64,000 bases of DNA from Mytilus edulis (Eukaryota), in contig NC_092347.1 in assembly GCF_963676685.1 (NCBI RefSeq), positions 2,914,001 through 2,978,000 of the forward strand, in the 5' to 3' direction. Each line of letters begins with the position of its first letter. Within the stretch, counting starts at the first letter, position 1. Both the position numbers and the translations under genes were made by a program. The notes under the pieces are model-generated. The model ran no database searches and was not told where the DNA came from. It saw only the letters and a program-made list of their open reading frames with translations. Below are positions 3,056 to 62,564 of this stretch, one piece after another.

Positions 3056-6000
3056 GTTTTTTTTTCTTTTTTTTTGTAATGTGTTTATAGGCAAAGAACT
3101 ACATGTATATTAACAATAGTAAATAAGTTCATAGTACATCAGCAAAATCGAGACAAGTGCATAAAGTTGACATTTGGAATCCTTCTATAAACATATAATA
3201 ATTATTAATAATAATTTTAAAAAAAAATAGAAAATCTTAATCTGAGGTAGCATGGATTGGGTAGATATTTTTATTACGTGAAAGTTAACTTATAAAATCA
3301 TTCTATTAGTTGGAGCCAGGGGTTCCAGCAGGTGTACGCTCTTTGCAGTGGTTTATTTTTATAAAATATTATTTTTGCAATAAACAAATTTTCTTTAAGA
3401 TAATTTTTTAAGGCTACACTATTTACTTGTCCACATTGCATTTTTGTTTTGTATATATAGTATTTAGTGAATAGTATTATGATATTTCTTATGAAGTTTT
3501 TTTCTGTTTTTTCTAATATCCCAAATAAGACTATATCTAAATTACGTGGTAGTTTAATTTGGACTTTTGAATATATCCATTTATTAAGTTCTTCCCAAAC
3601 ATCAAAAACGTTTGGACATGTCCAGAATATGTGTTCAATAGTTTCTATTGAGTCCAAACAGAAAGTGCATTTATTGTTTTGTGAGACTTTAATTTTGTAG
3701 AGTAATTTATTAGTTTCCAAAATTCTGTGATTATTTCTGTATTGCAGCCACTGTAATTTTGAGTTTTTAGTAATGTAAAACGGAAGTCTGTATATTTTAT
3801 TCCAAATAATATTATGTCTATTTAAGATTAAGGACCACTTTTTCTGTGATGTGATATTTGTTATTTGTTTCATTTAAAACATTGTACATGTCTTTTGATC
3901 CTTTTGTAGATTTCATAAATATAGAAATAGAAGTTGGTATAATTGGCCCATAAGGCTTTATAAGCTGATTACTTTTGATATCAAGACTTTTCATATAGGA
4001 ATAAACAGCTGACATTACTCCTTGAAATATAAGAAAGTTGGTTTCAATATCATATGTTTTTTTAAATTCCTGCCAATTCAATAAATGTCCCTCATTATCA
4101 ATTAAATCATTTATTAGCCAGACGCCCTTTTCAGTCCACGTTTTATATAGAGGGATTTGATTACCAATTTTAATTTCTTTATTATTCCAAAGATTAGATG
4201 TGATAAAATCGTATTCGTTCTTAATAGCTATTTTGGTTTGTAGTTCAGTCCAAGCATTAAAAACCTCCTGCCAAAAAGGATTTCTTACTTGTGTTCTTGG
4301 ACCTACCAAGAATAATTCATTTAATTCAATTTTTTCAGTACAAGTTAGTAACTTACAATAATTATTAGTTTGTTTGATTATTCTTCTTATCCAATTAGTT
4401 TTAATACTTTGATGTATTGTTATAGATTTAACATGTTAAGTCCACCCAGTTCATATATTTGAGCAATTGTTTCTCTTTTAATTTTGTCTGGTTTACCATC
4501 CCAAATAAAATTAAATATTTTTTTTATGAATTGATTTAGTAATCCATTATTAAGATATGGTAAAGTTAGAAATAGGTGATTGAGCTTTGAAATTATAAGG
4601 CTTTTAATTATAGTATTTTTCCAATTGGAGATAAGTATTTGTTAGACCAGCTTTTCATTGTTCTTTCTATCTCTTTAAATTTGAGTTCAAAGTTTAGCGT
4701 TTCCGTTTCTTGTAAGTCTACTGAATATGTAATACCCAAGAGCGTAAATCTGTTGGAACCCCATTCCAATCCCCACTTTACACACATTGTATCTTGGCTA
4801 TATTTCTTTTTCCCAATCCAGACTACCTTTGTTTTCTCTAAATTCATCTTGAGACCAGACCATTAAGCATATAGGTCTAAAACACAAAGAGATGCATCTA
4901 AGGATTCTGGTGAACCATCTAAAATAAGTGTGGTGTCATCAGCATATTGTGATATCAAAAATTCTGAGTCTTCAATAATAATACCTTTTATATTTTCGTT
5001 TTTTCTAAGTAATATTCCTAAAATTTCTGCACATAACAAGAAAATGTAAGGGGATAAAGGATCCCCTTGTCTGCAACCTCTTTCAATTGTAAACAAATCT
5101 GATAGAAAATTATTCTGCGTTATTGCTGATTTGGTATTTGTAAAAAAAGTTTTAACCCAATGTTTTATGGAATTTCCAAAGTTGAAAAAATCAAGAACTT
5201 GTTCTATTAAAATCCAGGATATTGTACCAAAAGCTTTATCAAAGTCAATGAGGAGGAGAATGCCTGGGATATCATTTTCTTCAGTGTAGTGTAGTAAATC
5301 GTATATTAGTCTGGTGTTTTCACCAATAAATCTACCAGGTATAAATCCTGTCTGGTCATTATTAATTAAGATTGTTAAAACTGACTTTATCCTTTCTGCA
5401 ATGCAACTTGATGCTAATTTATAAATATTATTTAGAAGACTGATTGGCCGCCAATTCTTCATGTATTGTTTTTGGTTTGTCACCTTTTGATATGCAAGTT
5501 ATAATACCTTGTTTTTGGGTAATAGACATTTCCCCTTGATTATAGGCATATTTAATTGATCTATGTATGAATTTGCCTATATCAATCCAAAAAATCTTTA
5601 TGAATTCATTTGTATATCCATCCGATCCAGGGCTTTTCTCATTTTTCATTCTTTTAATTGCATCAGTCAATTCTATAAAAGATATTTCCCCTTCTAACGA
5701 CTCTTTCATATTTTTAGATAATTTTGGTATATCTTTATGTGGTAAAGCATTGTTCAGATTAATAGATTTTATTTTATCTTACCTCCTATACATTTCCAGG
5801 AATATGATTGGTTAAAAGCGTCCGCGTGCAAACCGTGTATATTTGATATTAGGTTAGTAGGGAGGCGGGGCTTAGCTCATACACGGTTAGTAGTGGAGTT
5901 ACGTCCCTTTATATTCCTTATTAGGTAAGAAGGGGGCGGGGCTTATTACATACACGGTTAGTAATGGTGTTATGTCCATTTGTAAAAAACAAAACGGTAC

Positions 6001-9980: not shown

Positions 9981-10606
9981 AGAAGATGTGGTATGATTTC
10001 CAATGAGATAACTTACCATAAGAAACCAAAGGACACAGAAATGAACAACTATAGACCAGCGTACAGCCTAAACAATTAGCAAAGCCCGTACAACATAGTC
10101 AGCTATAATAGGTCCCGAGAAGATGACAAAAGCCCGTACAACATAGTCAGCTATAACAGGTCCCGAGAAGATGACAAAAGCCCGTACAACATAGTCAGCT
10201 ATAACAGGTCCCGAGAAGATGACAAAAGCCCGTACAACATAGTCAGCTATAACAGGTCCCGAGAAGATGACAAAAGCCCGTACAACATAGTCAGCTATAA
10301 CAAGTCCCGAGAAGATGACAAAAGCCCGTACAACATAGTCAGCTTTAATAGGTCCCGAGAAGATGACGAAAGCCCATACAACATAGTCAGCTATAATAGG
10401 TCCCGAGAAGAGGACAAAAGCCCGTACAACATAGTCAGCTATAATAGGTCCCGAGAAGATGACAAAAGTAAAACAATTTAAACAAAAAATATCGTCTTGT
10501 GTATGTATAAAATAATGAACGAAAAACGAAACGTTACTCTTTGACAACCACTGAATTACAGGCTCTTTCCCTTGGACAGACACATACAGAATGTGGTGGG
10601 GTTAAA
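9981..10606 (-). mobile_element. TW-b interspersed repeat copy with degenerate twister 3' half and internal minisatellite
   Basis: Collinear with the copy at 48580-49015. The minus strand starts TTTAA-CCCC-AC-CACAT..ATGTG and ends ..CATACCACATCTTCT. Confidence 0.8.
10081..10468. repeat. 48-bp minisatellite x8
   Basis: Unit AAAGCCCGTACAACATAGTCAGCTATAAYAGGTCCCGAGAAGATGACA at 10081, 10129 ... 10417. Confidence 0.95.
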
Positions 10607-12614: not shown

Positions 12615-13162
12615 TTTTCTTACCCCAGGAGTAGATTACCTTAGCCGTATTTGGCACAACTTTTTGGAATTTTGGGTCCTCAATGCTCTTCAACTTTGTT
12701 TTTATTTGGCTTTTTATCTATTTTGATCTGAGCGTCACTGATGAGTCTTATGTAGACGAAACGCGCGTCTGGCGTATAAAATTATAATCCTGGTACTTTT
12801 GATAACTATTTACACCACTGGGTCGATGCCACTGCTGGTGGACGTTTCGTCCCCGAGGGTATCACCAGCCCAGTAGTCAGCACTTCGGTGTTGACATGAA
12901 TATCAATTATATGGTCATTTTTATAAATTTTCTGTTTACAAAACTTTGAATTTTTCGAATAACTAAGGATTTTCTTACCCCAGGAGTAGATTACCTTAGC
13001 CGTATTTGGCACAACTTTTTGGAATTTTGGGTCCTCAATGCTCTTCAACTTTGTTTTTATTTGGCTTTTTATCTATTTTGATCTGAGCGTCACTGATGAG
13101 TCTTATGTAGACGAAACGCGCGTCTGGCGTATAAAATTATAATCCTGGTACTTTTGATAACT
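12615..13162 (+). mobile_element. Non-LTR retrozyme RZ-355 (355-bp unit x ~1.5) with two intact type I hammerheads
   Basis: 12615-12807 is repeated at 12970-13162 (period 355). Hammerheads lie at 12732-12775 and 13087-13130. Confidence 0.9.
12732..12775 (+). ncRNA. Type I hammerhead ribozyme (identical copies 13087-13130 and 49816-49859)
   Basis: GCGUCA-CUGAUGA-GUCU(UAUGU)AGAC-GAAA-CGCGCG-UC^UGGCGU: canonical core, G-C closed stem II, palindromic stem III ACGCGCGU, GUC triplet. Confidence 0.92.
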
Positions 13163-24311: not shown

Positions 24312-24760
24312 ATATATAAAATTTCAATCCTGTTATCAGTATGATGACCTAATTTCTATCAACTTGAACCACAGATATAGTTGTAAACAATTCTGACCTG
24401 CGGGTTTGTCGCCTCCTACTGCACAATCATAGAATTTCAACACGTTATGCTGCATTTTATTGTCTTATCATTCACTTACAACCCAACAGGTATCGCCCTG
24501 CATTCTTTAAACTTATATGTTTATCGTTGTATGATTCGATCACAAAAAATCGTCCCTGATCTGTATTCCAATAGTTCCAGTGTGATAATTTCAACACAAG
24601 ATATGACAAAATGGAGATCTTAAAATCTGTGCTTCTGAGTCTGGATCAATGTTTTAGTTTGACATGCATGCTGAATATTAAAATTCTACTGATATAACAA
24701 ATTATATTAGTCCATGAATTGTCATTATCCTATATGCTCAAAATTCAACAACGATGGAAC

Positions 24761-25092
24761 TACATTGGTTAGAGGTATAGGGGGAGGGTTGAGATCTCAC
24801 AAACATGTTTAACCCCGCCGCATTTTTGCGCCTGTCCCAAGTCAGGAGCCTCTGGCCTTTGTTGGTCTTGTGTTATTTTAATTTTGGTTTCTTGTGTACA
24901 ATTTGGAAATTAGTATGGCGTTCATTATCACTGGACTAGTATATATTTGTTTAGGGGCCAGCTGAAGGACGCCTCCGGGTGCGGGAATTTCTCGCTACAT
25001 TGAAGACCTGTTGGTGACCCTCTGCTGTTGTTTTTTTATTTGGTCGGGTTGTTGTCTCTTTGACACATTCCCCATTTCCATTCTCAATTTTA
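24761..25092 (+). mobile_element. TW-a interspersed repeat (others: 62075-62490 +, 51185-51320 -, 3' fragments 2322-2392 -, 31675-31830 -, 44880-44938 +)
   Basis: Shared body and common 3' end ..TTGACACATTCCCCATTTCCATTCTCAATTTTA, with variable 5' truncation. Confidence 0.85.
24767..24857 (+). ncRNA. Type P5 (circularly permuted) twister ribozyme, best copy; predicted cleavage U24810^A24811
   Basis: P5 24767-76/24848-57; P2 GGGG 24780-83/CCCC 24813-16; GAGGG 24784-88; UAA 24810-12; GC 24817-18; P3 CGCA/UGCG; P4 CCUG/CAGG with loop UCCCAAGU; A24847. Confidence 0.85.
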
Positions 25093-25550: not shown

Positions 25551-26670
25551 TTATTGAAAGAGTTGGTATTACTTTGCTTCATAAAAAAGAATGGCCAACG
25601 TAGATACAAGTATCTTGTCTTAGGGAGGGATAAATCATACTTTATAAAGAATCACTCTGATTCAAACAAAAAATTCTCTGAAACCGATATTATCATGCTT
25701 GATTTCTTGATTGACAACATATTTGTAACGGTTGGAGGACGTGTTTTTCAACAGACTGTCGGCATCCCAATGGGAACAAACTGTGCCCCTCTACTTGTCG
25801 ACTTGTTTCTTTATTATTATGAGGCTGACTTCATGCAGGAACTTCTTCGGAAGAAAGATAAGAAGTTAGCAATATTCTTTAACTCTACTTTCCGCTATAT
25901 AGATGACGTTCTTTCACTAAACAATTCAAAATTTGGTGACTATGTGGAACGCATCTATCCCATCGAGTTGGAGATAAAGGATACTACAGATACAGTTAAG
26001 TCGGCTTCATATCTTGACTTACATCTAGAAATTGACAACGAGGGTCAGTTGAAAACAAAACTTTACGACAAAAGAGATGATTTCAGCTTTCCAATTGTGA
26101 ACTTTCCATTTCTAAGTAGCAACATTCCAGCAGCACCTGCATACGGGGTATATATCTCCCAATTGATACGATATTCCCGTGCCTGCATTTCCTATCATGA
26201 TTTTCATGATAGAGGGTTACTGCTCACAAGGAAGCTATTAAACCAAGAGTTCCAAATGGTGAAGTTGAAATCATCCCTTCGTAAATTTTACGGACGCCAT
26301 CACGAGTTGGTTGACCGTTATGGAATAACCGTTTCACAAATGATATCGGATATGTTCCTTACGTCGTAACTACAATCCCCTTCCCTTTCATGAATGTGAC
26401 CTACCGAATTAGACTATTTACCGGATTTTATATCACATAATCAACACGACGGGTGCCACATGTGGAGCAGGGTCTGCTTACCCTTCCGGAGCACCTGAGA
26501 TCACCCCTAGTTTTTGGAGGGGTTCGTGTTGTTTATTCTTTAGTTTTCTATGTTGTGTCATGTGTACTATTGTTTTTCTGTTTGTCTTTTTCATTTTTGG
26601 CCATGGCGTTGTCAGTTTGTTTTGGATTTATGAGTTTGACTGTCCCTTTGGTATCTTTCGTCCCTCTTTT
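25551..26670 (+). mobile_element. 5'-truncated Penelope-like retroelement (RT palm + thumb ORF 25554-26369, no C-terminal GIY-YIG, plus 3' UTR)
   Basis: Motifs GIPMGTNCAPLL.DLFL, FRYIDD, SYLDL, TKLYDKRDDF, SNIP..AYGVYISQLIRY; stop shortly after the thumb. 3'-end-only relatives at 9380-9540 (-), 30475-30616 (-) and 47001-47042 (+). Confidence 0.88.
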
Positions 26671-28544: not shown

Positions 28545-29030
28545 AAAATATGCTATGACTGCCAATGAGACAACTCTCAATACAAGTCATCATGTGTAAA
28601 AAAATAAATATTGGTCAAAGTACGGTCTTCAACACGGATCCTTGGTTAACACCGAACAGTAAGCTATAAAGGGCCTCAAAATGACTAGTTGTAAACCATT
28701 CAAACGGGAATACCAACGATCTAATCTATATGAAAAACGAGAAACCACTTATGAACCACAGCAACAAACTACTTCTGAACATCAGTTTCATGACTTAGGA
28801 AAAGTGCAAACAAATGCAGCGGGTTTCAGTGTTTTAACAGGAACTCACCTTTACCCTTACCCGAAACTATAAAATATCAGTTGAAATGGCTTAACTCAAT
28901 CAAAAGACATATTAACTTAAGTGAACATACACTAATCGAATGAATTTAATCTATGACACAACGCAGCTAAACAATCCATAAAAAAGGATCCGGAGCGATG
29001 AATAAAGGCAACAATATCGTACCGCTGTGA
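28545..29030 (-). mobile_element. TW-e interspersed repeat with degenerate twister (~28780-28862); 3' parts also at 42225-42452, 44450-44625, 53862-54590 (split), 56565-56790, 61155-61410, 63148-63358
   Basis: Minus strand GGG-UAAAGG..AA-ACCC-GC-UGCA(UUUGUU)UGCA-CUUU-UCCUAAGU-CAUG-A. The 3' end ..GAGAGTTGTCTCATTGGCA.. is shared with TW-b. Confidence 0.7.
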
Positions 29031-34139: not shown

Positions 34140-34445
34140 TAACACGGTGATGACTACTGTACCCATATTTTGACTATTTTATTTATTATGTTTGTTAAGT
34201 TCACTCATCATTGTAAATATAACGGAATTTGATGAGACTGTCGTTCAAAGTGAGAGATTTAGCGCTATACAACCAGGTTTAATTCACCATTTTCTACATC
34301 TGAAAATGGCTGTACCAAGTCAGGAATATGACAGTTGTTGTCTATTCGTTTTTGTTGTGTTTTGTCATTTGATTTTGCCATGTGATATTTGATTTTCCTC
34401 TGATAATGTCTGAGTTCAGTATTTTTGTAATTTTACCTTTTTCTT
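34140..34445 (+). mobile_element. TW-c interspersed repeat with twister variant at 34237-34335 (others 38467-38630, 45465-45632, 3' fragments 40797-40871, 44372-44395)
   Basis: P5 ACUGUCGU/AUGACAGU; P3 CAUUUUC/GAAAAUG; P4 loop UACCAAGU; GAGGU is intact in the 45546 copy. Common 3' end ..TTCAGTATTTTTGTGATTTTACTTTT. Confidence 0.78.
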
Positions 34446-37920: not shown

Positions 37921-39669
37921 ATAATATCACATCTTATGTGTTATAAATAGTACGAAAAGTATAACTTAAAGAGACGATAAACATTTGCATATCCCACGTC
38001 TCAATTATTCATTAGTATGACGTACAGAACCACAGTTACAAATTAAGGTTATGATTGCCTACTTTTAACCTTGATATAAGGTGGATTACGTTGTCCAATA
38101 AACTCAATGCAATCTTTCCGAAATTGTAATGATGGTAATGAAATGTTGTAGGTAGACATATTATATTATCAACAGTCAGCTATTAGAACATAGTGGGTGT
38201 CTGCATTTTTACTGCATGTTATCCGATCGGACTAAATCAAATACGATCATATTAATTTATATCGTTTTTGTTTGACCTAAATGGCAAAATGCAAGTATCA
38301 AGATATATGTATAGAAGTTGTCAGAATAGTCATCATAATCCAAGTATTTTATTTTCGTGTGGAAATGTTTGGTGCATTCCTTATTGATTACCGAACAGTG
38401 GTTTATGAATGTCCTAGTGTACACAATCAAAAAACGGACGCAATCATCTGAGTCGCTTTTTTTAAAGTTTAATCCACCATTATCTATGAAAATGCTTGTA
38501 CCAAGTCAGGAATATGACAGTTGTTGTCCATTCGCTTGATGTGTTTTATCATTGATTTTGCCATTTGATTAGAGACGTTCCGTTGGAATTTTCCTCGGAG
38601 TTAAGCATTTTTTGTGATTTTACTTTTTTCATAAGAATACAACTTTGTTTGATTTTAAATAACATAGTGCAGTCGACTGCAACATTATTTGATTTTTTTA
38701 TAAACAAATTGTTATATATATTTTTTATTGCAATTTCGATTTAAAAACGCAGTTATTCATTTTCCAAAGAAAGGTGATAGGCAATGCGAGGTAACTCTAT
38801 ATGACTACTTTAAGTAGTCAACGTATTTTTGTTATTGCAATACCTATATAAATACGATAATATATCTTAAAATAATAATTTAAACAAGTTTATCAAATTG
38901 TATCACAATATTTCAATGAACATTCAGTAGAAACCCTTTAAGTCATATTTCCATATGTTATAAAATTATTTATGATCAGAGTTTACAGTGTATTAAAGGC
39001 TTAAATCACTTTTTATTATACATCAAACGTTTCCATAAGTATATATCCCGGAAATTGATAGCTTAAATTTCATATAATAATTTTCTTATATATAAAGATC
39101 TGCTGCTTACTATGAACTCATTTAAACAAGCTGTCAACATCAAACATTCCCAAATTATTTTTTTTCTAATTTCCTTGGCATTCTACAGCTGTTATAAGCA
39201 CATCAAAAGTTAATACCAAAAAATTGTCCATGCAACATTGAAATTTGTGTTTTACAACGTTTTACCGTAATGTTTTTTCTATAACATATTAAACAAGAAT
39301 TTTCACAAAGATGAGAAACAATTCTGTCACTTTTCAAAGCTGTTAATCATTTTAAAAAATTGAAACAGAATTAAAAAACGCAATGCATTTCAACACGAAT
39401 TTGTTTTTTAAATAATACTACTATCCTGTCATATCCATGGATACATATTTCATATTTTTCAGATAATAGAGAAAAACAAATTAGAATACATATCTGAAAT
39501 AAAATTGGATAATTCGATTTAACATATTTACAACAACAAACAGATAGGTTACACAAACATAAAAATTTGATGGTGCAATTTAACGACAAAATAAGAAAAC
39601 GTAGCTATAAAGACATATATACATATCACTGTTAATATAACAAAAATAAATCACATTCGAGGTCGTCAT

Positions 39670-40475
39670 AAAGAAAGGCAACAGTAGTATACCGCTGTTC
39701 AAAACTCATAAATCCATGGACAAAAAACAAAATCGGGGTAACAAACTAAAACTGAGGGAAACGCATTAAATATAAGAGAACAACGACACGACATTAAAAT
39801 GTAACAAACACAGAAACGGACTAAGCATAAGACAAAATCCTATGAGAAAAACAAATATAACATCAAAACCAAATACATGAATTTGGGATAGATAAGTACC
39901 GTGACACGTCTTATAGTAATGTGAATTCACACACAAAAATAAGAGAAAAAAAACGACACAACAGAAACACAACGTTAAAATATAACACACACATAAACGA
40001 ACTATAATATAACAATGGCCATATTCCTGAATTGGTACAGGAAATTTTTAAAAGAAAAAATGGTGGGCTGAACCTGGTTTTGTGGAATGCCAAACCTCGC
40101 ACTTTAATTGCAATGTTTTATATAATATTAAAATGACAACATAATATTACAGGACTACAATACGAATATATAAGAGAACGTATTATGCAAAGAAACACAT
40201 GAATAATAGATAACAAAAGGCATCAGGTTTAAAATTCAATACGCCAAAAACGCGCCTCGTCCACACAAGACTTACCAGTGACGCCTAGATATAAAAGTTC
40301 GAAAGGAAAAAAAAGTTCAATGTTGTACAGCACTGAGGATCAAAATTTGAAAAAGGTTGTGCCAAATAAGGCTAGGATTTTCTGCTTGTGATAAGAACAT
40401 CCTTATTATTTAGAACAATTTATGCTATTGAAAACAGTAAATTTTACAAATGAATATCAAAGATATACATGATAA
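39670..40475 (-). mobile_element. Composite TW-d element: RZ-355-like 5' part with decayed hammerhead, then twister variant (~40016-40110), then 3' tail
   Basis: 40220-40475 aligns to RZ-355. Minus strand GUGC-GAGGU-UUGGCAUUCCA-CAA-AACCAGGUU-CAG-CCC-AC-CAUUUUU..CCUG-UACCAAUU-CAGG-A. The 3' end ..GGTATACTACTGTTGCCTTT also occurs at 18560-18621 (+) and 40890-40985 (-). Confidence 0.72.
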
Positions 40476-43400: not shown

Positions 43401-46400
43401 TTAAATGTTAAAGATGTGATTTATCATTTCGGCTCCTGTGTTTACTTACATTCTATTGTTGTTTGCTTTTCAATAACTATTCAACACCGTTTATCTTATA
43501 CACAAACTCTTCATCAATAATCAAACTACTGTAAATTCATACTTTTTGCATGCATATATTTTTGTGATTACTAAACAGTCGAATCATATATAAGTATAAC
43601 CATTGAGAAATTGTAAGGGATATTCGGTAAGGTTACAATGGGGATGTTTAAACATAGGTGAATCATTTACAGGGACACTTTAAACAGCTTATATCATAAA
43701 TGAACACGCAATTCTGAGCAGTGATTTCTACTTTTCATGGTAATTGATCACTTCAGTGTTTATAGAAGGTTTTATATTGAAATACAGGTACATCCTCTTC
43801 CAAAAAATAGGGGGAAAAACTTCATGTAGCTCTATATCTTTTACAAGGGAATCGTTTAATCTAAATATCGCCCAACAAATAAGATAAATCTAAAACATCC
43901 ATATATATTTTACAATTGTATTTCTAATATAATGGCAGGTGTATGTGCTTTTATAACTTAAACTATTTTTATATAGTTATGAACATGTATTCGAATGTTT
44001 TAAGTTACACAAGTGTTGAAACTTAAATGAAATATTGAAGTTGAATCTAAATATACATATAAATGTTCCTTCTATATAACATACACCTGTTCCTTATTAA
44101 TATATAATTTATTAATAATATATATTGACTGAAAAGAAATCAAGGGCAGTCAATTTCTGACCTTATGTAATAAATAAAATTAATTAAAGATTCCTTGAAG
44201 TGTATCATATCAACTGTTTATTTATCATTATAATTTATGAGTACAAAGTGACAAGTTATTACAAATATGTGTCAAACTTACGTCTGAACAAATTATTAGT
44301 ATAAATTATAAATCAATTCGCGATATGGTTTATGTTTATCGAAGTATAAATAACGAAAACGTAGCACGTTCTTATTTTTGTGATTTTACTTTTTTCTACA
44401 TAAGGACCGTAATAATATAAGTATGTATACATACGTTTTTTTATATATATTATAGATAAGACCGTTTGTTTTCCTGTTTGAATTGTTTAACACTAGTTAT
44501 TTTGGGGTCCTTCGGTGATTACCAAGGTCCGTGTTGAAGGCCGTATTTAGACCTATAATTATTTAAAATTCGAGACTTGGATGGAGACTTGTCTCATTGA
44601 CACTCATACCACATCTTCTTGTGTCTAGTATACTGATTTTTACTGCATTTTCTTTTAAAACCATAATATATGTGTGCATATGTACATATTACGTCATTTT
44701 AGGTGAGGATAAACAAAGCAAATCCATTACTAGAATCGAACCATGTATAGAGTATACAAAAATTTCATACAACATTTCCAATTGCCCTAAAATTGTAATT
44801 CTGAATAGGTTGTTTTAAGCTGTTAAGCAGTAACTGCAATTTGAACTGCCGTTTTCGTCAAACCGATAAGCTGTGTTCCGCTTTTTGATCGGGTTGTTAT
44901 CTTTTTTGACGCATTTCCCATTTCCATTTTCAATTTTAAAGTAAATATTGCTGTTTTCATCCTTTGGTACATTTCAGCATTTCGACATATATGGAAATAT
45001 AAAAAAAAAATATGTAATTTTGTATTTGTCGCATGAAATATAGGTGACCGTTTTAAAGTGAAAATACAACTAGAGTATTCAAATAAATATACAATTACTA
45101 TAAACAAAGACGTCAACAAAAAAAGTCCATATAGTGGAAACAAGTTATGAGGTTGACAAGCAAAAACACATAGCACACCATTGCAAAACGAATGACAAAA
45201 ATATCTGCAATTCAAACACTTAAGGCAAAATCTAGAATAAGAAAAACAAGCTCTTTCGGAAGCAGGTGTGATCCATTATTTTAATTTCCCACAATTTGGA
45301 AAGTATATAGATGTAGGATTTCAGCTAGCTAGGATAAAACTGTAGTGATAATCATTTGCACCCATCAACCTTGTATTTGGACGTGTGTAAAATGCATCTT
45401 TGGTTGAATCTTTTTTGTTTAAAATATTTGTGACTTATCTTTGTGGTACCCCTTTTTTTGACATTTTGACCTTCTGTGTCTCTTTGTTTTATTCACACGT
45501 TGTTGTAATTATTCATGGAATCTTATGCAACTGTCATATACGTGAGAGGTTTAGCTACATGTAGCTATAGAACCAGGTTTAACCATCATTTTGTACATAC
45601 GAAAATGCCTTTATCATGTCAGGAATATGGCAATGTAAAAGACCAGATATTTCACTAAATAAGACAGAGCAGAACAGCCACTTTTAAAATTTGAGAACAC
45701 CGGAAAACTCATAACATTGGCATATTTCAAAATAAAGAAAACTAAAAAATGCAAACCGGTTAATAACATAAAACCAATAAAAATATCAATCGCTTTGCAG
45801 ATATTTCACATATCCTACCATGGAAAAATCCAGTTTTGAGTCATAAGACATTTGAACACCGCAGTAATGCTTAGGTGTTTTAAAATTATCTTAGCTGTAA
45901 AGATTTGATGTAATTGCGGTTAGGTCATACAGTTATCATATGTCTCCTTTGGTAGTTGTGGGGGAATATCGGTCATTAAATAATATATAAGTACAGCTGA
46001 TTGACACTTAAATTTTCATTCAATTGATATCGTCGTGTTCTTCCTTCTGTAGTAAATCATAAATGTATCTATATACAGAATACCATGATCAAGGTAGGGA
46101 ATTCATCTTATCAAGTCTACATCATCTGGTAAGGGGGAGACCATTTAGATCTTTTGATGGGGATTCGGGGGGTAGGCAGCCGGATTTTTCTATATTGAGG
46201 ACGGTTTTTAATTTACACCTGTTACAATGCCGGGTCATTTTATCGTATGGCTTTTCCGCTTGAGAATTTGTTTTCAATTTTGCGCATATTTTTTTACAGG
46301 CTGATACAATATTTTTTACAGGCTTATACAAGTTATAGGACAGATTATACATTTTTGATATTTACGTTGATAGATGTCAAAATTTGTGTATAGATTATCT

Positions 46401-48579: not shown

Positions 48580-49015
48580 GACCCGGCCACATCCACTTGT
48601 ATTTTTGTCCATCGGATGAGTTAAGCCTTTTTCAACTAATTTGTATAGTTCGTTCTTATGTTGTACTGTTATAACACTGTCAGGTTAGGGGAGGGTTGGG
48701 ATCCTGTTACCATGTTTAACCCCGCCATATTATGTATTTATGTGCCTGTCTCAAGTCAAGAGCATGTAATTCAGTGGTTGTCGTTTATTTATGTGTTACA
48801 TATTTGTTTTTCGTTCATTGTTTTATATAAATAAGGCCGTTTGTTTTCTCGTTTGAATTGTTTTACACTGTCATTTCGGGGCCTTTTATAGCTGACTATG
48901 CATTATGGGCTTTGCTCATTGTTGAAGGCCGTACGGTGACAATATTCTGTGTCATTTTGGTCTCTTGGGGTAAGTTGTCTCATTGTCAATCATACCACAT
49001 CTTCTTTTTTTATAT
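48580..49015 (+). mobile_element. TW-b long copy with mutated twister (48675-48776); others 51925-52192 -, 55245-55428 +, 59528-59645 -, 59915-60018 +, 50950-51110 +
   Basis: AGGG-GAGGG-UUGGGAUCCU..ACCAUGUU-UAA-CCCC-GC-CAUAU..AUGUG-CCUG-UCUCAAGU-CAAG-A. Confidence 0.8.
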
Positions 49016-49426: not shown

Positions 49427-50466
49427 CAGGGCCGTAAATTCGCCGGGCGGAGCGAGGCGAAAACATTTTTGGACCCTTTTTAGACCAAATGTTGTTTTTT
49501 TTAAATCGGGTTTTTTCCCTGTATGCAATGAACCTCCCCTTTTTTGTCTGTTCCAATCGAGCTATTTTAACTTCGCTTCACAGACACAATTTAAAAACCT
49601 TAAACTGAAAATTCATATGTAATTTATTACTCTTAATTTTGATTAAATTCAAATTAATATAAAGTAACACTGTGTGTTTATACTGAAAGTTTTATTTGGT
49701 TAAGCTTTATCAAATGCCAAGGCGATTTTTCTGTGACCGGAGGAATCCTATCTCTTGAGCACTTATATATGCACAAACTTTGTATTTGTTTGGCTTTTTA
49801 ACTGTTTTGATCTGAGCGTCACTGATGAGTCTTATGTAGACGAAACGCGCGTCTGGCGTATTAAATTATAATCCTGGTACTTTTGATATCTATATACCTT
49901 CAATATTGCCAACATTGTCACTTCTATGTATGTGTAGCACCACACAATCTGTTTTCCGTCATTGTCGACCTATTCCAAGTTTGAGAGGCCATAGTTATAC
50001 TTACATTATTAACAAGTTGGTTAGTCTATGCACAAATTATGACGATTCTTCTAGTTGTTAACCATTAAATGTGGCGCAACACTAGGACCAGTGGTCCAGT
50101 TTCACTTAACCTCGCAATTTGCTCCTCAGACTGGTATGGCGAGACTGCAGGATTTTTATTATGCCCGCGAATGAGACACAGGAGAATCCCTTGCTACAAA
50201 ATTGGGGGGAAATTTTTACGTGTACAAAGGAGTTGGGTACCGTTCAGCGATATTCACCAGATTTAAATATCGAACACATCCTGCAATTATGATTAATATG
50301 ATTAATCACCTTGTTGGTCAAATTATTAACCGGTGATATTAAAATAATGCATGATTTTAACCATTTTTTTTTTTATTTTCTGAGGGTTTTTTTTTCGTAT
50401 TTTTTTGTTGGTTAGCCCGCAATAGGAGGCAACTGCCTACATGCCTCCATGTAATTTACGGTCCTA
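49427..50466. mobile_element. MITE with 14-bp TIRs, containing a solo RZ-355 hammerhead fragment (49776-49890)
   Basis: TIRs CAGGGCCGTAAATT / AATTTACGGTCCTA; TSD unclear. Confidence 0.6.
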
Positions 50467-53400
50467 ATATATATATCAAAAGCAGGCTTAAATTTTGTTC
50501 TTTATTGAAAATAAGGTTATTAAAATAACTTAAGTTCGTGTTTATAGGAATTTCTTTGTTACAACGATAATAGCGCTATCTTTGCATTGTGTTAACTAAT
50601 TGGATTTGCCATTTAAATTTTGTTTTTTTTAATTTTAGGTGGGTTTTTTTTAAACAGTGTCCGATTTTGACAGCAGTTTGGTTGGGACCTTTCCGTTTTG
50701 ACTGGGCGGAGTTTAACCGGTTCGCTCATAATAAACCAGTCAATCTATAGATAGGTGTTTTAGAATATTAAACTCATCATTGAAGTGTCCAGTCATTCTT
50801 TGATGACATTGATAGGTGATTAGAAATCAGTTATAATTATAACGGTAATTATCCTTATCACACACATCTTCAAATAGACTGTCCTTATGCAAATTAAAAC
50901 GTAAGCTCCGCCCGATCAGTTGAAATAACATTGGTAATACGTTTGAATTATTTTACATGTTGTCATGCTGGGGCCTTTAATTGTTGTATATACGATACGG
51001 AGGTTGTCTATTGATGAAGGTTATACGGTTTCCTATAATTAATTTAATACCCGTCATTTAGAACGAGTTTGACAGTTGTCTCATTGGTAATTCTACCACA
51101 TCTCCTTTTATTCTGTAACGTCAATAGTTTGTTTTTAAACATAATGATATCATTCATAAGAAAGTGATATCAATGACTTAAGACAGACAAAACAAAATGC
51201 GGCCGGTTTAAACAAGATCTCACCCCCCCCTTTTTACCTCTAGCGAATGCAGAATAAACAAACCCATAGAAATACGCACAAAAACTCAGTTTGAAAGAAG
51301 TCCGAGTCCAGCGTATTCGGGAAAATATTAACAATCTTTATAGCAAAATATTTTTAAAAACATGGACACACGACCTAGTATTGATCAATCAGAAACAGCA
51401 ATACTACAGAAAACATTATAAAGTCGCCTCTCAAAACCTAGATGTTAAATGTGCTGTACTTAAAGATAAAACTTCTTACTTTTTCTTTAGTCATATACAT
51501 TTGTACTACAACCCTATCGGTTTAGATAATTTTTTTCTAGAGCTCGTCCAAATCCAAAGTTTACTGCCTTAAACTCATTGTATGTAATCAGCATGCATGT
51601 CATGCCATGTTTTACAAGCAGAATACAAAAACCCATTTTGTAGTAATCCGTTTTCGATTCATTGGTTATTCACAAGAAAAATATAGTAATCCTCGCTAAA
51701 TACAGTTGTTGTTTTACGCATGAAGTTGAAGTCATTAACGTAACAGAAGGCATTTAACATATAAGAAAATGGCATGGTAGTTTTTTCTGGCAGACAAGCT
51801 AGGAAATTTACGATTTAAAAAGAACTTGTTTTTCTTGATTTTCTTTATATATTCATATTGAAATGAATATATAAGAATAAGAACTAATCTTTATTCTCAT
51901 AAACCATAAGGTACAACGGTACAGAGATATGGAAGATGTGGTATGATTCCCAATAAAACAAATCTCCATTGGAAACAAAATGACGTAAAATGACCAACGA
52001 TGGATCACGGTTAGGCACACTACAAATGGCCTCGAAATGACAAACGTATAACAATACAAAGAGAAAGCAAACGGACATATTCATGTACAAAACAATATCA
52101 TATAAATATGATATACAACAACAAACTGCAACAACTGAATAACAGGCTCCTGATTCAGTACAGGCAAAAATACAGCATGTGGTGGGTTTAAATAGCAAGC
52201 TCTAATCATTTTATGGATTTTTACAAGGACATCTTTACTTTATAGGTCTCAAGAAAGTATGTTAGATAATATACTAAGTTAAAATTATCAATCAAATGAG
52301 TAATTTAATTCATTTGCTTTTCTTTACTGATAAAATTAATTTGAAGTAAAGTATTTTAAAGATATAAAATAATAGATTTACATGTCATCTACTTACAATG
52401 TTGATAATGTGCATAAAAATAAAACCTAATATTATCCACCAACATTCTTATGTGAGTGGTATATATCAATGTGAAGCATCTCCGTGATAGACAACATGTC
52501 AATGGCTGGTTTCATCTAGAGATATTTACATTTTTAATTCTATTTTATTACTTGATTCATATTCAATTGAAAATTTCAATGTAAAAAACGCTCCATGTAG
52601 ACACATTGATGTAGACATATTGATATATCAATCTTGATTCATCTTAAGTATTTGCATTTTGAAATTCTTTTTCTTTTAACTCATTTTCAATAACCATTGT
52701 AAAATTAATGTAAAAAAAGCTTCAAACAGACTTTAACCTTTCGCATGCATATAATATTCGTTGTTTCTGAAACCTTCTTGTATAGTATTGGAGGTTCTTT
52801 CATTTTCCTTGTTTTTTTAGTCCACTTAAAAAGGAAGGTTGTCTTGTGTATTATCTGAACCTTTTCTAATTTTATGAGTTTGGTGTTGACGTTAGATGCT
52901 CAGTGGACACTTTTAAATTTATTCACAATAACTTTTATGGCATATTTTTTTCGCAGTGTTTCATTATTGAATACCATATGAGGAGTCCTATTGGTTTTAT
53001 ATGTCGTTGGGTTGGTGTATTTTTGTCTTAATATAATAATGTTATCTAAGGTATGAATATCTACATATCAAAATGCATATGATAAAATTTCTTCAAAACA
53101 CCAATTAATCAAAGAACGTACTATGAAGTGTCTGTTAATTGAAACAAGTACCCAAAAATTGGAATAAAACACGAAAAGATTGCCAAATGTTAAGAAACGG
53201 ATCTCAAAAATAGACACTTTGACAGAAATAAAAAATTGTATTTTTAGATAGTCTTCGTGCATGCACCTACATGTTTGTTGGTAAACAAATAATTAAAAAC
53301 AACACGTATCGATCTTCGTTCGTTTGACTGGTCATTTACACGAAAAAATATAAACTAATCCTGTAAATACACTTGTTGGATTTATGCTTGAAACTTTGGT

Positions 53401-54932: not shown

Positions 54933-56529
54933 TGTCTTACGTGTACTTGTATTATGATAGCATCTGATGGTATATGAAAAACAATAACGGGTAGATGTTC
55001 AAATAAATACAAAATTTTCATTTCAGGATATTTTTAAAATCATGAGCAAATGTCCAGGAAATAATATTAATATAATTAAAAGTTACTAGCTAGACATGCA
55101 TAATGCGTTAAAAGACACAATCCTTTCAGTTTGATGAGGTTTGCTGTAAAATCAAGACGGACACGTTCATGAACTTATCGTTGTAGCTTTATATAAACCA
55201 AAGTTATTTAAGGAATATATGCATACACATTATGTAAGTACATGAATGTGTCGGTCCCAAGTCAGAAGCCTGTAATTCAGTAGTTGTATGTGTCGTTTGT
55301 TACTGTGTTACATATTTGTTTTTTCGTTTATTTTTTTAAATTGTACATTAATAAGGCCGTTGGTTTTCTCGTATGAATTGTTTTACATTTGGGGTTTCGG
55401 GGTCTTTTAAATAGCTGACTATACGGTAAGAAACATATTTTCTTTTTCTGGTGACAGTCTGAATTTCTTTGGATTGCTGCAAGCAATTCTATTAATGTAT
55501 CCTATCAGTTCTAGTGATTTTCTAGAATGAAATATTTTCATTCTTAGACAGGTTAAGTAAGTCTGACATGAGCTAAATAAGGATGTTGGAATATGTGGAT
55601 GTTGGGTTCCATTTTTATTTTCATTCTCCAGTCGACACAGTGTGCTAAGCCAATCTGTTTAATTTATTGTTTGTTTGTATTGTCCTGAATATGCACGAAA
55701 AACTTGTCTCTTTACGTTAGGCAAACAATAACGTTCAATCTAGAAATCCTTTAAATTACGTAAAGTTTTTTTAATTCAAAATTGATGCACTTCCTTGAAA
55801 CACATCTCTAACAGTTATGGCTTCTCAATAAGGTGATTCGTTTGACATAGACAGATAAATACATAAGGTAGCTACAAAAATAAGCAAACTTCAAAAATTA
55901 TATTGTTTGAATGAATATCAAAAAAGATCTATGAGGTAAACGTCTGAAAAGTTTCAAAAAACTCAAATTTACAAAAAAATAGATAAAGAATGTTCAGAGG
56001 TTACATATACCAAAATACTTCCGGTGCATGCCAAGACATCATTTCGTTAGCTCTAAATCGACCCGTGTCTAAACAAAGTTTTGTATATAATCAAACTATT
56101 AGACATCAACACCTTATTCTCAATAGATCAAGCATATCTTGAAGAGACAATCTCTAGAGGGATTCCCGACTTATTATTATTTTACACTTTTTGTAGTTAA
56201 ACTATCATGTATATATAATTCAATTATATTGATATTTCAAAATAACACTTGAAAATAAAATTTCAAAAAATATATATTATATAACACCTTATCAAATTAA
56301 AAACATAATCAGTTACGTTAAGCAACCTCAAGTGTTTTATTTATGAAATAACCTCTTGTTTACTCTAATACATTTCAATAACTTTCAAGTAGCAACGTTT
56401 TACACAGTGTAAAGAAAGCATTGTCAATTTATATAGAAGTTAGACACTCTTGATAATACATTGTCAATAGTAAAGACGTCTGACTTTCAAATAGAAAATA
56501 GAAAGAAAAGAGAAAATATGATTTCTGTA

Positions 56530-57506: not shown

Positions 57507-57743
57507 AAAATTATTAAAAGATAAAAACGGTTTCAATGCATCACTTTTTTACTAGTACTTTCACTGCTTCCGCAGATCTTCAGGTAATGTGACTTGTATA
57601 TAAATAAAACAATTGATTGACGTCAATCTATTGTTTTATTTATATACAAGTCACATTACCTGAAGATCTGCGGAAGCAGTGAAAGTACTAGTAAAAAAGT
57701 GATGCATTGAAACCGTTTTTATCTTTTAATAATTTTCTTATAT
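57500..57743. repeat. 244-bp near-perfect loopless palindrome between two (TA)n tracts (57475-57503, 57778-57802)
   Basis: Axis at 57621/57622 (TGAC|GTCA); one T.T mismatch seen at 57614/57629. Confidence 0.95.
57651..57702 (+). ncRNA. Minimal type I hammerhead (mirror copy 57541-57592, - strand)
   Basis: UCAC-A-UUAC-CUGAAGA-U-CUGC(GGAA)GCAG-U-GAAA-GUAC-UA^GUAA-AAAA-GUGA. Confidence 0.78.
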
Positions 57744-60470: not shown

Positions 60471-62177
60471 CCTATATTGCATTGACCCCATACAAAGGCT
60501 ATATTTTTTATATTAATAATTTCAGACCATATCTATATCAATATCGTCAATGTTGGAATTTTATAGATATCATATTGTCTCCTTGTGCTTTTTGATGTGC
60601 AATATGCTTTTTGCTATCCACCGTTTTCTCCCTACCTTCGAAAATATAGTTTAAAATGCGACTATCCATAAACTAATCAAATATGTTAAAATACAAAATG
60701 TATACGAATTAATGAAATATGTTTCTATACCCTGTTAATGTATACACACTAAATAAATAAATATTGACAGTATGCTAAGACGGGAAAGGGGGGGGGGGGG
60801 GTGTCAGTGACAAAAAACTACTGAGATCCTTAATTGTTTGGAACAAAGATATAGAGTTGTCGAAGTATAGTGAATCGATCAAAGTTCGAAATAGCTAAAA
60901 TCCACATTAATTTATAGAGTAATATTTGTATGGTGATCGGTATTCATCGTTAAATGATGACTATCAGCATTGAATAAGCTTCCGACAAACAGAAGCTGTG
61001 GACTTTACAATGCTTTTTTGGTGTCTGAAATTTAGTCATGATTTCAGTCGTATTTCATTTTTGTCTTGCCTACACAAAGAGGAAAATAGTGAGACAAAAG
61101 TATAGTGTTTCCAGGGGCATCAGCTTAAAAAAGTTTATGCTTATATAAATGTTAAAAGATGTGATATAAGTGTAAATGAGACCACTCTCCATCCAACACC
61201 CACATGGGGAAAAGTAAAGCATTATAGGTCAACGCATGGGCTTCAACAATGAGTTTTGGCTCACATCGAACAACAAGCTACAAAGGGCCCCAAAAATGAT
61301 TAGTTTTAGACCATTCAAAAATGAAAATCAACGGTCTAATCTTTATAAAAACGGGAAACAATTATGAACCACATTAACAAACAATTGTCATTGAACATTA
61401 GCTTCCTGACTATATACAAAGATGAAGAGAACAAATGACATAGAAATTAACAACTACAATAGGTCAATGTACTTCAATAAGCAGAGTCCATACCGCATAG
61501 TCGGCTATGAAAGGCATTTCATTGTGAAAGTTATGATGTAGTCCTAGCAGTTAAATAGGAGCCACATACGGTATGTTAGTAATATGTTATAATACAAGTG
61601 TACATCTCATTTCTAGGGAGATTTTTGTAACTCAAACCCCTCAATTATTGGATAGATTTTTGACATGGCTTATTAAAGTTTAAGATTATGTTAGTGAAAT
61701 AATTTTTCAAACAAAGCTAAGACAATTATGTACTATTTTAAAAGTCATTTTTGTGATTATATGAGTCGATTTCTGTCTCTATATGAATGGAGTGTTTATG
61801 CTGTTTAGTATCTCATTCATTGAAATGTTTAACTATATGATCAAGCCGACTACAAATGATTGCTATTGTTTTATTAGATTTTCATTTTTTTATTTAATTA
61901 TATACAGGAAATTTTCTCGAACGTTGCTTATTTGAAGATCAAATTAATGCATGTATCTTGAGATGAATTGCATTGGAACGTGAAAATTCAAGATTTTCAA
62001 TTAAATTTCGTGTAATAGTTGACAACGAATAATCTATAAAAGAAAAGAAAAGAATTGCATAAAACAGTGCATTGTTATAAAATTCTATTTCCACAATCGT
62101 CTGACATCGGACTCTGACTTCTCTTGAACTGAATTTTAATGTGCGTATTGTTATATATGCGTTTACTTTTCTACATT

Positions 62178-62268
62178 GGCTTGAGGTATAGGGGGAGGGT
62201 TGAGGTATCATAAACATGTTTAACCCCGCCGCAATTTTGCACCTGTCCTAAGTCAGGAGCCTCTGGCC
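62178..62268 (+). ncRNA. Second near-intact TW-a twister; predicted cleavage U62221^A62222
   Basis: Same layout as the 24767 copy, with loop UCCUAAGU (G.U in T1), a C.A mismatch at the base of P3 and one U.U in P5. Confidence 0.75.
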
Positions 62269-62564
62269 TTTGTTAGTCTTGTATGATTTTTAATTTTAGT
62301 TTCTTGTGTATAATTCGGAGTTTAGTATGACGTCCATTATCACTGTACTAGTATACATATTTTTTAAGGGGCCAGCTGAAGGACACCTACGGGTGCGGGA
62401 ATTTCTCGCTACATTGAAGACCCATTGGTGGCCTTCGGCTGTTGTTTGCTCTATGGTGGGGTTGTTGTCGCTTTGACACATTCCCCATTACACAGTTTCT
62501 GTCGAATTTTTTTCCCGTGATTTTTTTTAAATTTTTGAATTAGACGGTTAGTTTTTCTCGTTTA

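Follow-up and report, generated by a model that had tools for sequence, protein, structure and literature searches.

We propose, as the likely reading of the data described here, that Penelope-like retrotransposons (PLEs) of the Naiad clade carry in their 3′ untranslated region (UTR) or pseudo-LTR an RNA of twister fold, with a role resembling that of the hammerhead ribozyme and with self-cleavage that would depend on the pairing of two copies. Self-cleavage, its dimer dependence and a role in retrotransposition are what we infer; the fold, the palindromes at the place of its P1 helix and the assignment of the host element are set out below. The window is the whole 64-kb stretch of Mytilus edulis DNA that was analyzed, and its numbering is used throughout.

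The twister ribozyme class, including type P5, was reportedly described by Roth et al. in 2014, and many eukaryotes carry twisters. RTE elements are mentioned in connection with them (PMC7761336), and the only work that a de la Pena laboratory paper of November 2026 cites for twister in retrotransposons is that on Schistosoma. Naiads are reported to be without canonical hammerheads, and as the PLE clade singled out for having no ribozyme they prompted the question whether the hammerhead has any importance for the mobility of PLEs (PMC8557442). No publication joining ‘twister’ and ‘Naiad’ was found in the searched literature, and no report of a link between twisters and PLEs is apparent in the literature on both, as judged mainly from titles and abstracts. 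Within that scope, no earlier description of these repeats as twisters was found, in line with the sequence-only reading, which knew of none. What is probably new, to go by the sequences, is a P1-less and probably dimeric twister variant in a new host, the Naiad PLEs.

Architecture of the window copy

Read directly, the letters of 24767-24857 make up a complete type-P5 (circularly permuted) twister with P5, P2, P3, P4 and both pseudoknots (Table 1). The order inside P5 is AUA, GGGG, G-A, GGG, a 22-nt linker, U^AA, CCCC, GC, a 12-nt hairpin, CCUG, UCCCAAGU, CAGG and A. The layout that the sequence-only reading had given letter by letter matches the sequence, with P5, P2, T1, T2 and P4 at the positions that it assigned. 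Its element order holds for all core parts, except that the stretch left unspecified at the place of P1 forms no hairpin.

Table 1. Twister features and twister copies in the window, with the evidence for each (R1, covariance model built in this work).
Feature	Position	Strand	Evidence
TW-a copy, 5′-truncated, 333 bp, 3′-UTR tail only of a Naiad-clade element	24760-25092	+	98-99% identical genomic copies
Type-P5 twister domain, P5 5′ strand to P5 3′ strand	24767-24857	+	Rfam Twister-P5 alignment, 23.1 bits; R1, 88.6 bits (same copy among the sequences used to build R1); pair counts
P5 5′ strand, partner 24848-24857	24767-24776	+	10 bp, 3 G·U; MFE fold; duplex −21.7 kcal/mol, z −6.4 versus shuffles
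P2 5′ strand GGGG, partner CCCC 24813-24816	24780-24783	+	Covarying across copies
Conserved G24784-A24785, then T1 5′ strand GGG (24786-24788), partner CCC 24836-24838	24784-24788	+	G21, A22 invariant (n = 16)
pal1, 10-nt perfect palindrome UGAGAUCUCA at the site expected for the P1 3′ strand	24790-24799	+	Homodimer −15.4 kcal/mol, monomer 0.0
pal2, 10-nt perfect palindrome AAACAUGUUU, last nucleotide directly 5′ of the scissile bond	24801-24810	+	
Predicted cleavage site U24810^A24811 (A24812 next)	24810-24811	+	UAA position in Rfam alignment; A48, A49 invariant
T2 5′ strand GC, partner GU 24841-24842	24817-24818	+	
P3 hairpin (optional twister stem)	24819-24830	+	Hairpin in 19/19 families
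P4 CCUG/CAGG, loop UCCCAAGU, conserved A24847	24831-24847	+	Rfam alignment, invariant columns, P4 covariation
Second, older TW-a-type twister copy, loop CCC to CCU	62175-62274	+	R1, 77.7 bits; 88% identical to 24760-25076
TW-b-type twister copy, slightly decayed	48672-48777	+	R1, 62.3 bits
TW-c-type copy, T1 GGU/ACC	40009-40118	−	R1, 52.2 bits
TW-c-type copy	34234-34341	+	R1, 38.8 bits
Further decayed twister copy, labelled T1 AGG/CCU type	28772-28872	−	R1, 36.0 bits
Decayed TW-c-type copy	45542-45624	+	nhmmer, E 0.005
Partial copy, 3′ half only	38457-38527	+	R1, 29.2 bits
Partial copy, from P4 onward	55201-55283	+	R1, 24.1 bits
Decayed TW-a-like copy	51155-51248	−	R1, 22.3 bits
Partial copy, 3′ half	52132-52218	−	R1, 19.9 bits
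Partial copy, 3′ half	10571-10606	−	nhmmer, E 0.003

The Rfam Twister-P5 model aligns to the domain from end to end, in keeping with the assignment made by the sequence-only reading, but its score of 23.1 bits (E of 0.0056 on 221 nt) falls below the gathering threshold of 37.6. All upper-case consensus positions of the model are matched except that AAGC is changed to AAGU; the model skips the P1 region and penalizes the P3 hairpin. The Twister-P1 model gave 24.1 and 23.0 bits (gathering threshold 67.2), a gathering-level Rfam scan of the 64-kb window returned no match, an E-value scan of the whole window lost the twister to the search filters, and the Rfam family search of the 1.37 Gb genome found nothing among the 79 of 31,236 candidates that were scored. 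By database score alone, 24767-24857 is a lead and not a member of the twister family.

Further copies were sought with nhmmer and with a covariance model, R1, built here from twister copies. T1 and T2 were left out of this search model, and the T1 and T2 pair counts given below are therefore not fitted to them. A regular-expression descriptor gave 57 matches on the wrong strand and 22 in shuffled sequence and was for this reason used only to dissect sequences found by nhmmer or by the covariance model.

Conservation and covariation of the fold

The pairing test comprised the 13 pairs of P2, P4, T1 and T2 in a MAFFT alignment of 16 diverse copies. In these copies 95.1% of the cells are paired, compared with 78.1% in shuffles, and the covariation score is 0.456 against 0.131 in shuffles, with none of 500 shuffles as high; these values bear out the proposal that T1 and T2 covary across the repeat families. 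A shift of the 3′ partners by 1-3 columns (n = 16) lowers pairing to 32-51% and the covariation score to at most 0.075. With TW-c copies included (n = 21) 89.4% of the cells are paired, and 40 distinct model-aligned copies from the genome and from marine-metagenome contigs give 90.6%, compared with 74.4% when shuffled.

Nineteen columns are invariant among the 16 copies, every one of them at an Rfam twister consensus position or within the pal2 stretch, and they include G21, A22, G24, A48, A49, C53, C55, U72, C74, A76, A77 and G78. The copies have the conserved twister core, namely the G-A before T1, N^AA, the loop U-CCC-AAG-Y and the A after P4. Two divergent Naiad twisters (L080:3939-4048 and L100:1856-1965; UUCCCAGG and UCCCCAGU, respectively) have CAG for AAG in the P4 loop, at a position that is otherwise invariant.

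P2 is paired in 85-89% of the cells and P4 in 94-97%, with double-sided changes at three and two pairs, respectively. P2 occurs as GGGG/CCCC, GGGU/ACCC, GGGA/UCCC, GUGU/ACAC, GGGC/GCCC and GAGU/ACUC, and P4, besides CCUG/CAGG, as GCUG/CAGC, ACUG/CAGU, ACCG/CGGU and GCAG/CUGC. T1 is paired in 89-98% of the cells by GC, AU, GU, UA and UG pairs, with a U·U at the third pair in one clade. Its forms are GGG/CCC, GGU/ACC, AGG/CCU and GGA/UCC; the first three had been named by the sequence-only reading, and AGG/CCU was read here in two other loci (L058 and L059) rather than in the window. T2 is paired in 91-100% of the cells, and its first pair (CG, GU, AU, GC or UG) is never unpaired in the 21 copies; both forms described before, GC/GU and AC/GU, are present. 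P5 (10-19 bp) and P3 occur in 19 of 19 families with unrelated sequences, as anticipated from the window alone, and their mean z values are −4.9 and −6.0, respectively.

The TW-c-type copies (34312, 45546, 38495 and 40115) have poor P2 pairing, with either a P2 of only 2-3 bp or a loss of T2, depending on the register, and their sequences suggest that TW-c twisters may be weak or inactive. Of the original assignment to twister type P5, the fold, the permutation and its sharing across repeat families thus stand, with the reservations that P1 is absent and that P2 is weakened in TW-c. The covariation, the shuffled and slid controls and the invariance of unpaired consensus positions argue for selection on the twister fold, and from the aligned sequences we conclude that the motif is a predicted twister fold of the P5 permutation that has been maintained by selection.

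Absence of P1 and the two palindromes

The linker between T1 and the cut is 20-24 nt long with a monomer fold of 0 to −4 kcal/mol, and no P1 helix in cis was found in it. The linker contains two palindromes instead. The first, pal1, is 8-10 nt long and perfectly palindromic in all of the 20 families; it begins 1-2 nt downstream of T1, at the expected start of the P1 3′ strand, and its sequences are diverse between families (for example UGAGAUCUCA, UGGGAUCCCA, GGGCGCCC, GCAGCUGC and GUAGCGCUAC). The second, pal2, has a length of 6-10 nt and is without mismatch in 16 of 20 families; its last nucleotide is at position −1 or −2 relative to the scissile bond, which is the usual end of the 5′ strand of P1 in twisters. 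The L088 family keeps pal2 through a G·U pair, which points to plus-strand RNA as the form in which it is needed. Homodimers of the linker have energies of −13 to −23 kcal/mol across families. The centers of the palindromes are self-complementary as well, and a hairpin therefore cannot account for them; pairing between two molecules would explain them, on these computed energies. With two self-complementary stretches in the place of P1, the RNA is probably active when two twister units form a dimer. The two palindromes cannot share one continuous duplex, so that the geometry of such a dimer is conjecture.

The palindromes could also serve a twister that is active as a P1-less monomer, by allowing RNA pairing (in template switching or tandem formation) or cDNA hairpins. 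P2, T1, T2 and P4 are complete on their own, and twister variants of Schistosoma Perere-3 whose P1 is lacking or mismatched do cleave, both in vitro and in reporter constructs, although P1-less twisters are reported to cleave inefficiently (PMC8501958). Such a monomer would, however, leave without a reason that pal2 ends and pal1 starts just where the two strands of P1 should, that the centers are self-complementary where a hairpin would not need it and that the G·U pair in L088 favors RNA, and we regard it as unlikely.

Host element

The TW-a copy in the window ends in CTCAATTTTA at 25083-25092, and genomic copies matching 24760-25092 differ in their 5′ ends, with every intermediate length seen. 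The longest TW-a unit (L050:3043-6904) is ∼3.9 kb in length, and ∼3.97 kb if measured from the tail before it. TW-a units stand head to tail in this locus, with twister cores near 2626 and 6591, and in another locus (L063) a twister module is present on each side of the reverse transcriptase (RT). The twister is located ∼310 nt after the stop codon and ∼235 nt before the 3′ end of the element.

The TW-a unit is one long frame (read in L050 and L054) with a GIY-YIG-like block IIYLLT..QYVGETG, a K/R-rich block KKRSHGRRTNRNQRK, CNC, KGPKY, PADKA and an RT with YLDD. A Pfam search of this frame recognized no RVT_1 or other domain and a PDB sequence search gave nothing useful; the 13 best PDB matches to an AlphaFold model (pLDDT 76.6) are all telomerase RT chains, with E down to 1e-6, which is what a PLE should give. 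Naiads are characterized by an N-terminal nuclease, CxC, GxKF/Y, DKA replacing DKG, a length of 3.4-4.4 kb, 5′ truncation and partial tandems with pseudo-LTRs (PMC8557442). The TW-a element has a telomerase-like RT, the motifs, a unit of 3.86-3.97 kb, scattered 5′ ends and tandems. By these sequence features we assign TW-a as the 3′-terminal ∼333 bp of an autonomous Naiad-clade PLE of ∼3.9 kb, and the other twister repeat families likewise as the tails of related Naiads. The window copy is an insertion from a mussel family that is young and very abundant.

The frame in L050 contains in-frame TGA codons at 3419, 3512, 3545 and 4820, of which three fall within the Zn-finger/GIY-YIG region. About 50 nt after the stop, at L050:6317-6381, SECIS_1 is matched with 31.7 bits. 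The four in-frame UGA codons and the SECIS_1 match place the TW-a element among the selenoprotein-encoding Naiads. Sub-threshold SECIS matches (26.6-33.1 bits) are also present in ten metagenome Naiad contigs.

An RT profile search led to 80 marine-metagenome contigs with RTs that are 38-99% identical. The twister module lies downstream of the RT and on its strand in 29 metagenome loci (RT identity 43-99%) and upstream of the RT as a pseudo-LTR in three, with one opposite-strand match. In 13 RT contigs with room downstream there is no twister module, and no Rfam hammerhead or twister match was found at E up to 5. One metagenome contig of 4094 bp (L054, JACSEI010000432.1) encodes an RT protein that is 99% identical to the TW-a Naiad RT (tblastn); it begins in the tail of the element and continues into the 5′ end, which fits a tandem or a circular assembly of one ∼3.97 kb unit. 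In the window, the TW-a copy is directly followed by a fragment of a different Naiad RT (25578-26357, + strand; 69% identical to the RT of L113), downstream of which no twister module was found.

Copy number

Twelve whole or partial twister cores were found in the window, ten with R1 and two with nhmmer, a number equal to the sequence-only estimate of about 12; five shuffled windows gave no match. Genome-wide, one 31-mer of the TW-a core has 5,402 exact copies in 1.37 Gb (0 for the reversed control), and the TW-c family, which is the commonest, has at least 4,254 first-look candidates. The description of the carriers as very high-copy non-autonomous retroelements is right in its first half, but the carriers are for the most part not non-autonomous: colinearity links the short copies to the 3′ end of a coding element of ∼3.9 kb, with all intermediate lengths present.

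Other classifications of the repeats were considered and rejected. Filing them as retrozymes or SINEs does not agree with the colinearity with the coding element, and the genome-wide counts give no large class of short copies. A SINE-like subfamily starting at 24760 was suggested by 6 of 35 sampled copies that start there, but the genomic 31-mer counts are without a clear excess. A tRNA or pol III head for the 5′ part was dropped once the element proved to be the tail of a PLE. Several independent TW-a copies (in L014, L015, L022 and L026) share with the window copy the start CTACATTGG, which precedes the first P5 nucleotide (24767) by 7 nt. A short tandem array on the − strand of L052 (2167-2451) consists of ∼56-nt units from the 3′ half of a TW-c twister, each beginning shortly ahead of the predicted cut and ending shortly past P4.

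Proposed function

The Naiad twister would most likely do the job that the hammerhead does in other PLE clades. In partial tandems the 3′ UTR that carries the twister becomes a pseudo-LTR, and a read-through transcript of a pseudo-LTR and a full copy would contain two twisters at a distance of one unit (∼3.97 kb). If both were cleaved at N^AA, the product would be a unit-length RNA with 5′-OH and 2′,3′-cyclic phosphate ends, which could be re-joined. Dependence on a dimer would limit cutting to multimeric or paired RNAs and would spare single-copy RNAs.

The 31-mer spanning the cut has 5,558 exact genomic copies, compared with 5,402 for the 31-mer just 3′ of it, and no genomic copies starting at the cut were seen in these counts. 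Genomic copies thus retain both sides of the cut, which indicates that RNA that has been cut and not ligated does not usually serve as the template; the same is true of hammerhead-bearing PLEs. In older families the ends of partial copies are 3-4 nt to the 5′ side of the cut and not at it, so that they give no basis for deducing cleavage in vivo.

That copies never end at the cut and that P1 is missing would also suit a structured twister fold in the 3′ UTR that no longer cuts and perhaps serves the Naiad RT in recognition or priming. Some copies begin just 5′ of P5, so that the twister and the tail may be the minimal mobilized unit, and PLE hammerheads cleave poorly in vitro too (PMC4209133). 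However, the unpaired consensus positions (G-A, AA, AAG and the A after P4) are invariant or almost so across elements whose RTs are 43-99% identical, which is more than a fold that only binds protein would require, and we consider the loss of cleavage to be quite improbable. That a single transposon came to resemble twister by chance and that copying then multiplied it can be dismissed as very improbable: at 23 bits a handful of chance matches would be expected in 1.37 Gb (from the scaled E-value) and none of the Rfam matches reaches the gathering level, but compensatory changes affect both pseudoknots and all helices in many families and contigs, the slid-partner controls collapse, and the strand and the position relative to the RT are fixed.

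With a cleaving, dimer-dependent twister as the preferred reading, PLEs may have recruited two unrelated ribozymes for one job, the hammerhead in most clades and the twister in Naiads, both with a cut-adjacent helix that is formed only between copies; we offer this generalization tentatively. If it is true, natural obligate-dimer twisters would have their first example in the Naiad motif, and no larger reservoir of the twister class would be known than bivalve genomes, in which the copies would number from thousands to tens of thousands. Naiads dominate the genomes of bivalves and other invertebrates, and a conserved twister at the same place in them would answer the question about the hammerhead: a self-cleaving RNA, of one class or another, would appear to belong to PLE biology throughout. 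The twister class would be extended to a P1-less, palindrome-bearing architecture that is missed by the Rfam thresholds, and to a second retroelement lineage beside its one known carrier, Perere-3. The Naiad twister would also offer a directly testable case of dimer-gated RNA self-cleavage.

Comparison with known ribozyme-bearing elements

The Naiad motif shares with twister type P5 (Rfam RF02684, clan CL00120) the element order, the conserved nucleotides, P2, P4, T1, T2, the optional P3 and P5 and the predicted N^AA cut. It differs in having two palindromes in place of the P1 hairpin, a P3 insert and a T2 partner that is often GU or GG instead of GC, in scoring below the Rfam thresholds, and in being eukaryotic and located in a retroelement at thousands of copies. 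The T-variants of Perere-3 from Schistosoma mansoni, an RTE non-LTR element, are likewise borne by a retrotransposon at high copy number and have a relaxed or absent P1. They are, however, of type P1 and located at the 5′ end of a LINE, where the cut is the 5′ end of the element and the target-site duplication supplies P1 (PMC8501958), whereas the Naiad motif is P5-permuted and located in the 3′ UTR or pseudo-LTR, with the cut internal to every copy.

The minimal hammerheads of PLEs belong to a ribozyme class unrelated to twister. They resemble the Naiad twister in their PLE host, in the pseudo-LTRs that flank the ORF and in a cut-adjacent helix (helix III) that is reduced to a palindrome, which implies dimers, the form in which they have been proposed to act (PMC4209133; Lunse et al., 2017, as cited in PMC6765202).

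Animal retrozymes, which are tandem hammerhead repeats that give circular RNAs, are like the Naiad twister in forming ribozyme-bounded units that could be excised and circularized, but they are short and non-coding and carry a hammerhead, whereas the Naiad carrier is a coding element of 3.9 kb with a twister (PMC7229834). Three type-I hammerhead matches of 33.0 bits (Rfam gathering threshold 34) are located on the + strand of the window at 12732-12775, 13087-13130 and 49816-49859, of which the first two are hammerhead repeats of the retrozyme kind, 355 nt apart as in a tandem retrozyme. Since these matches occur beside twister copies in the same window, both kinds of carrier coexist in this genome. 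A further structured element of the window is a long hairpin at 57570-57673, which on both strands gives matches to several microRNA families that stay far under their thresholds (46.8 versus 90 bits for mir-2831) and is probably an inverted repeat of a mobile element.
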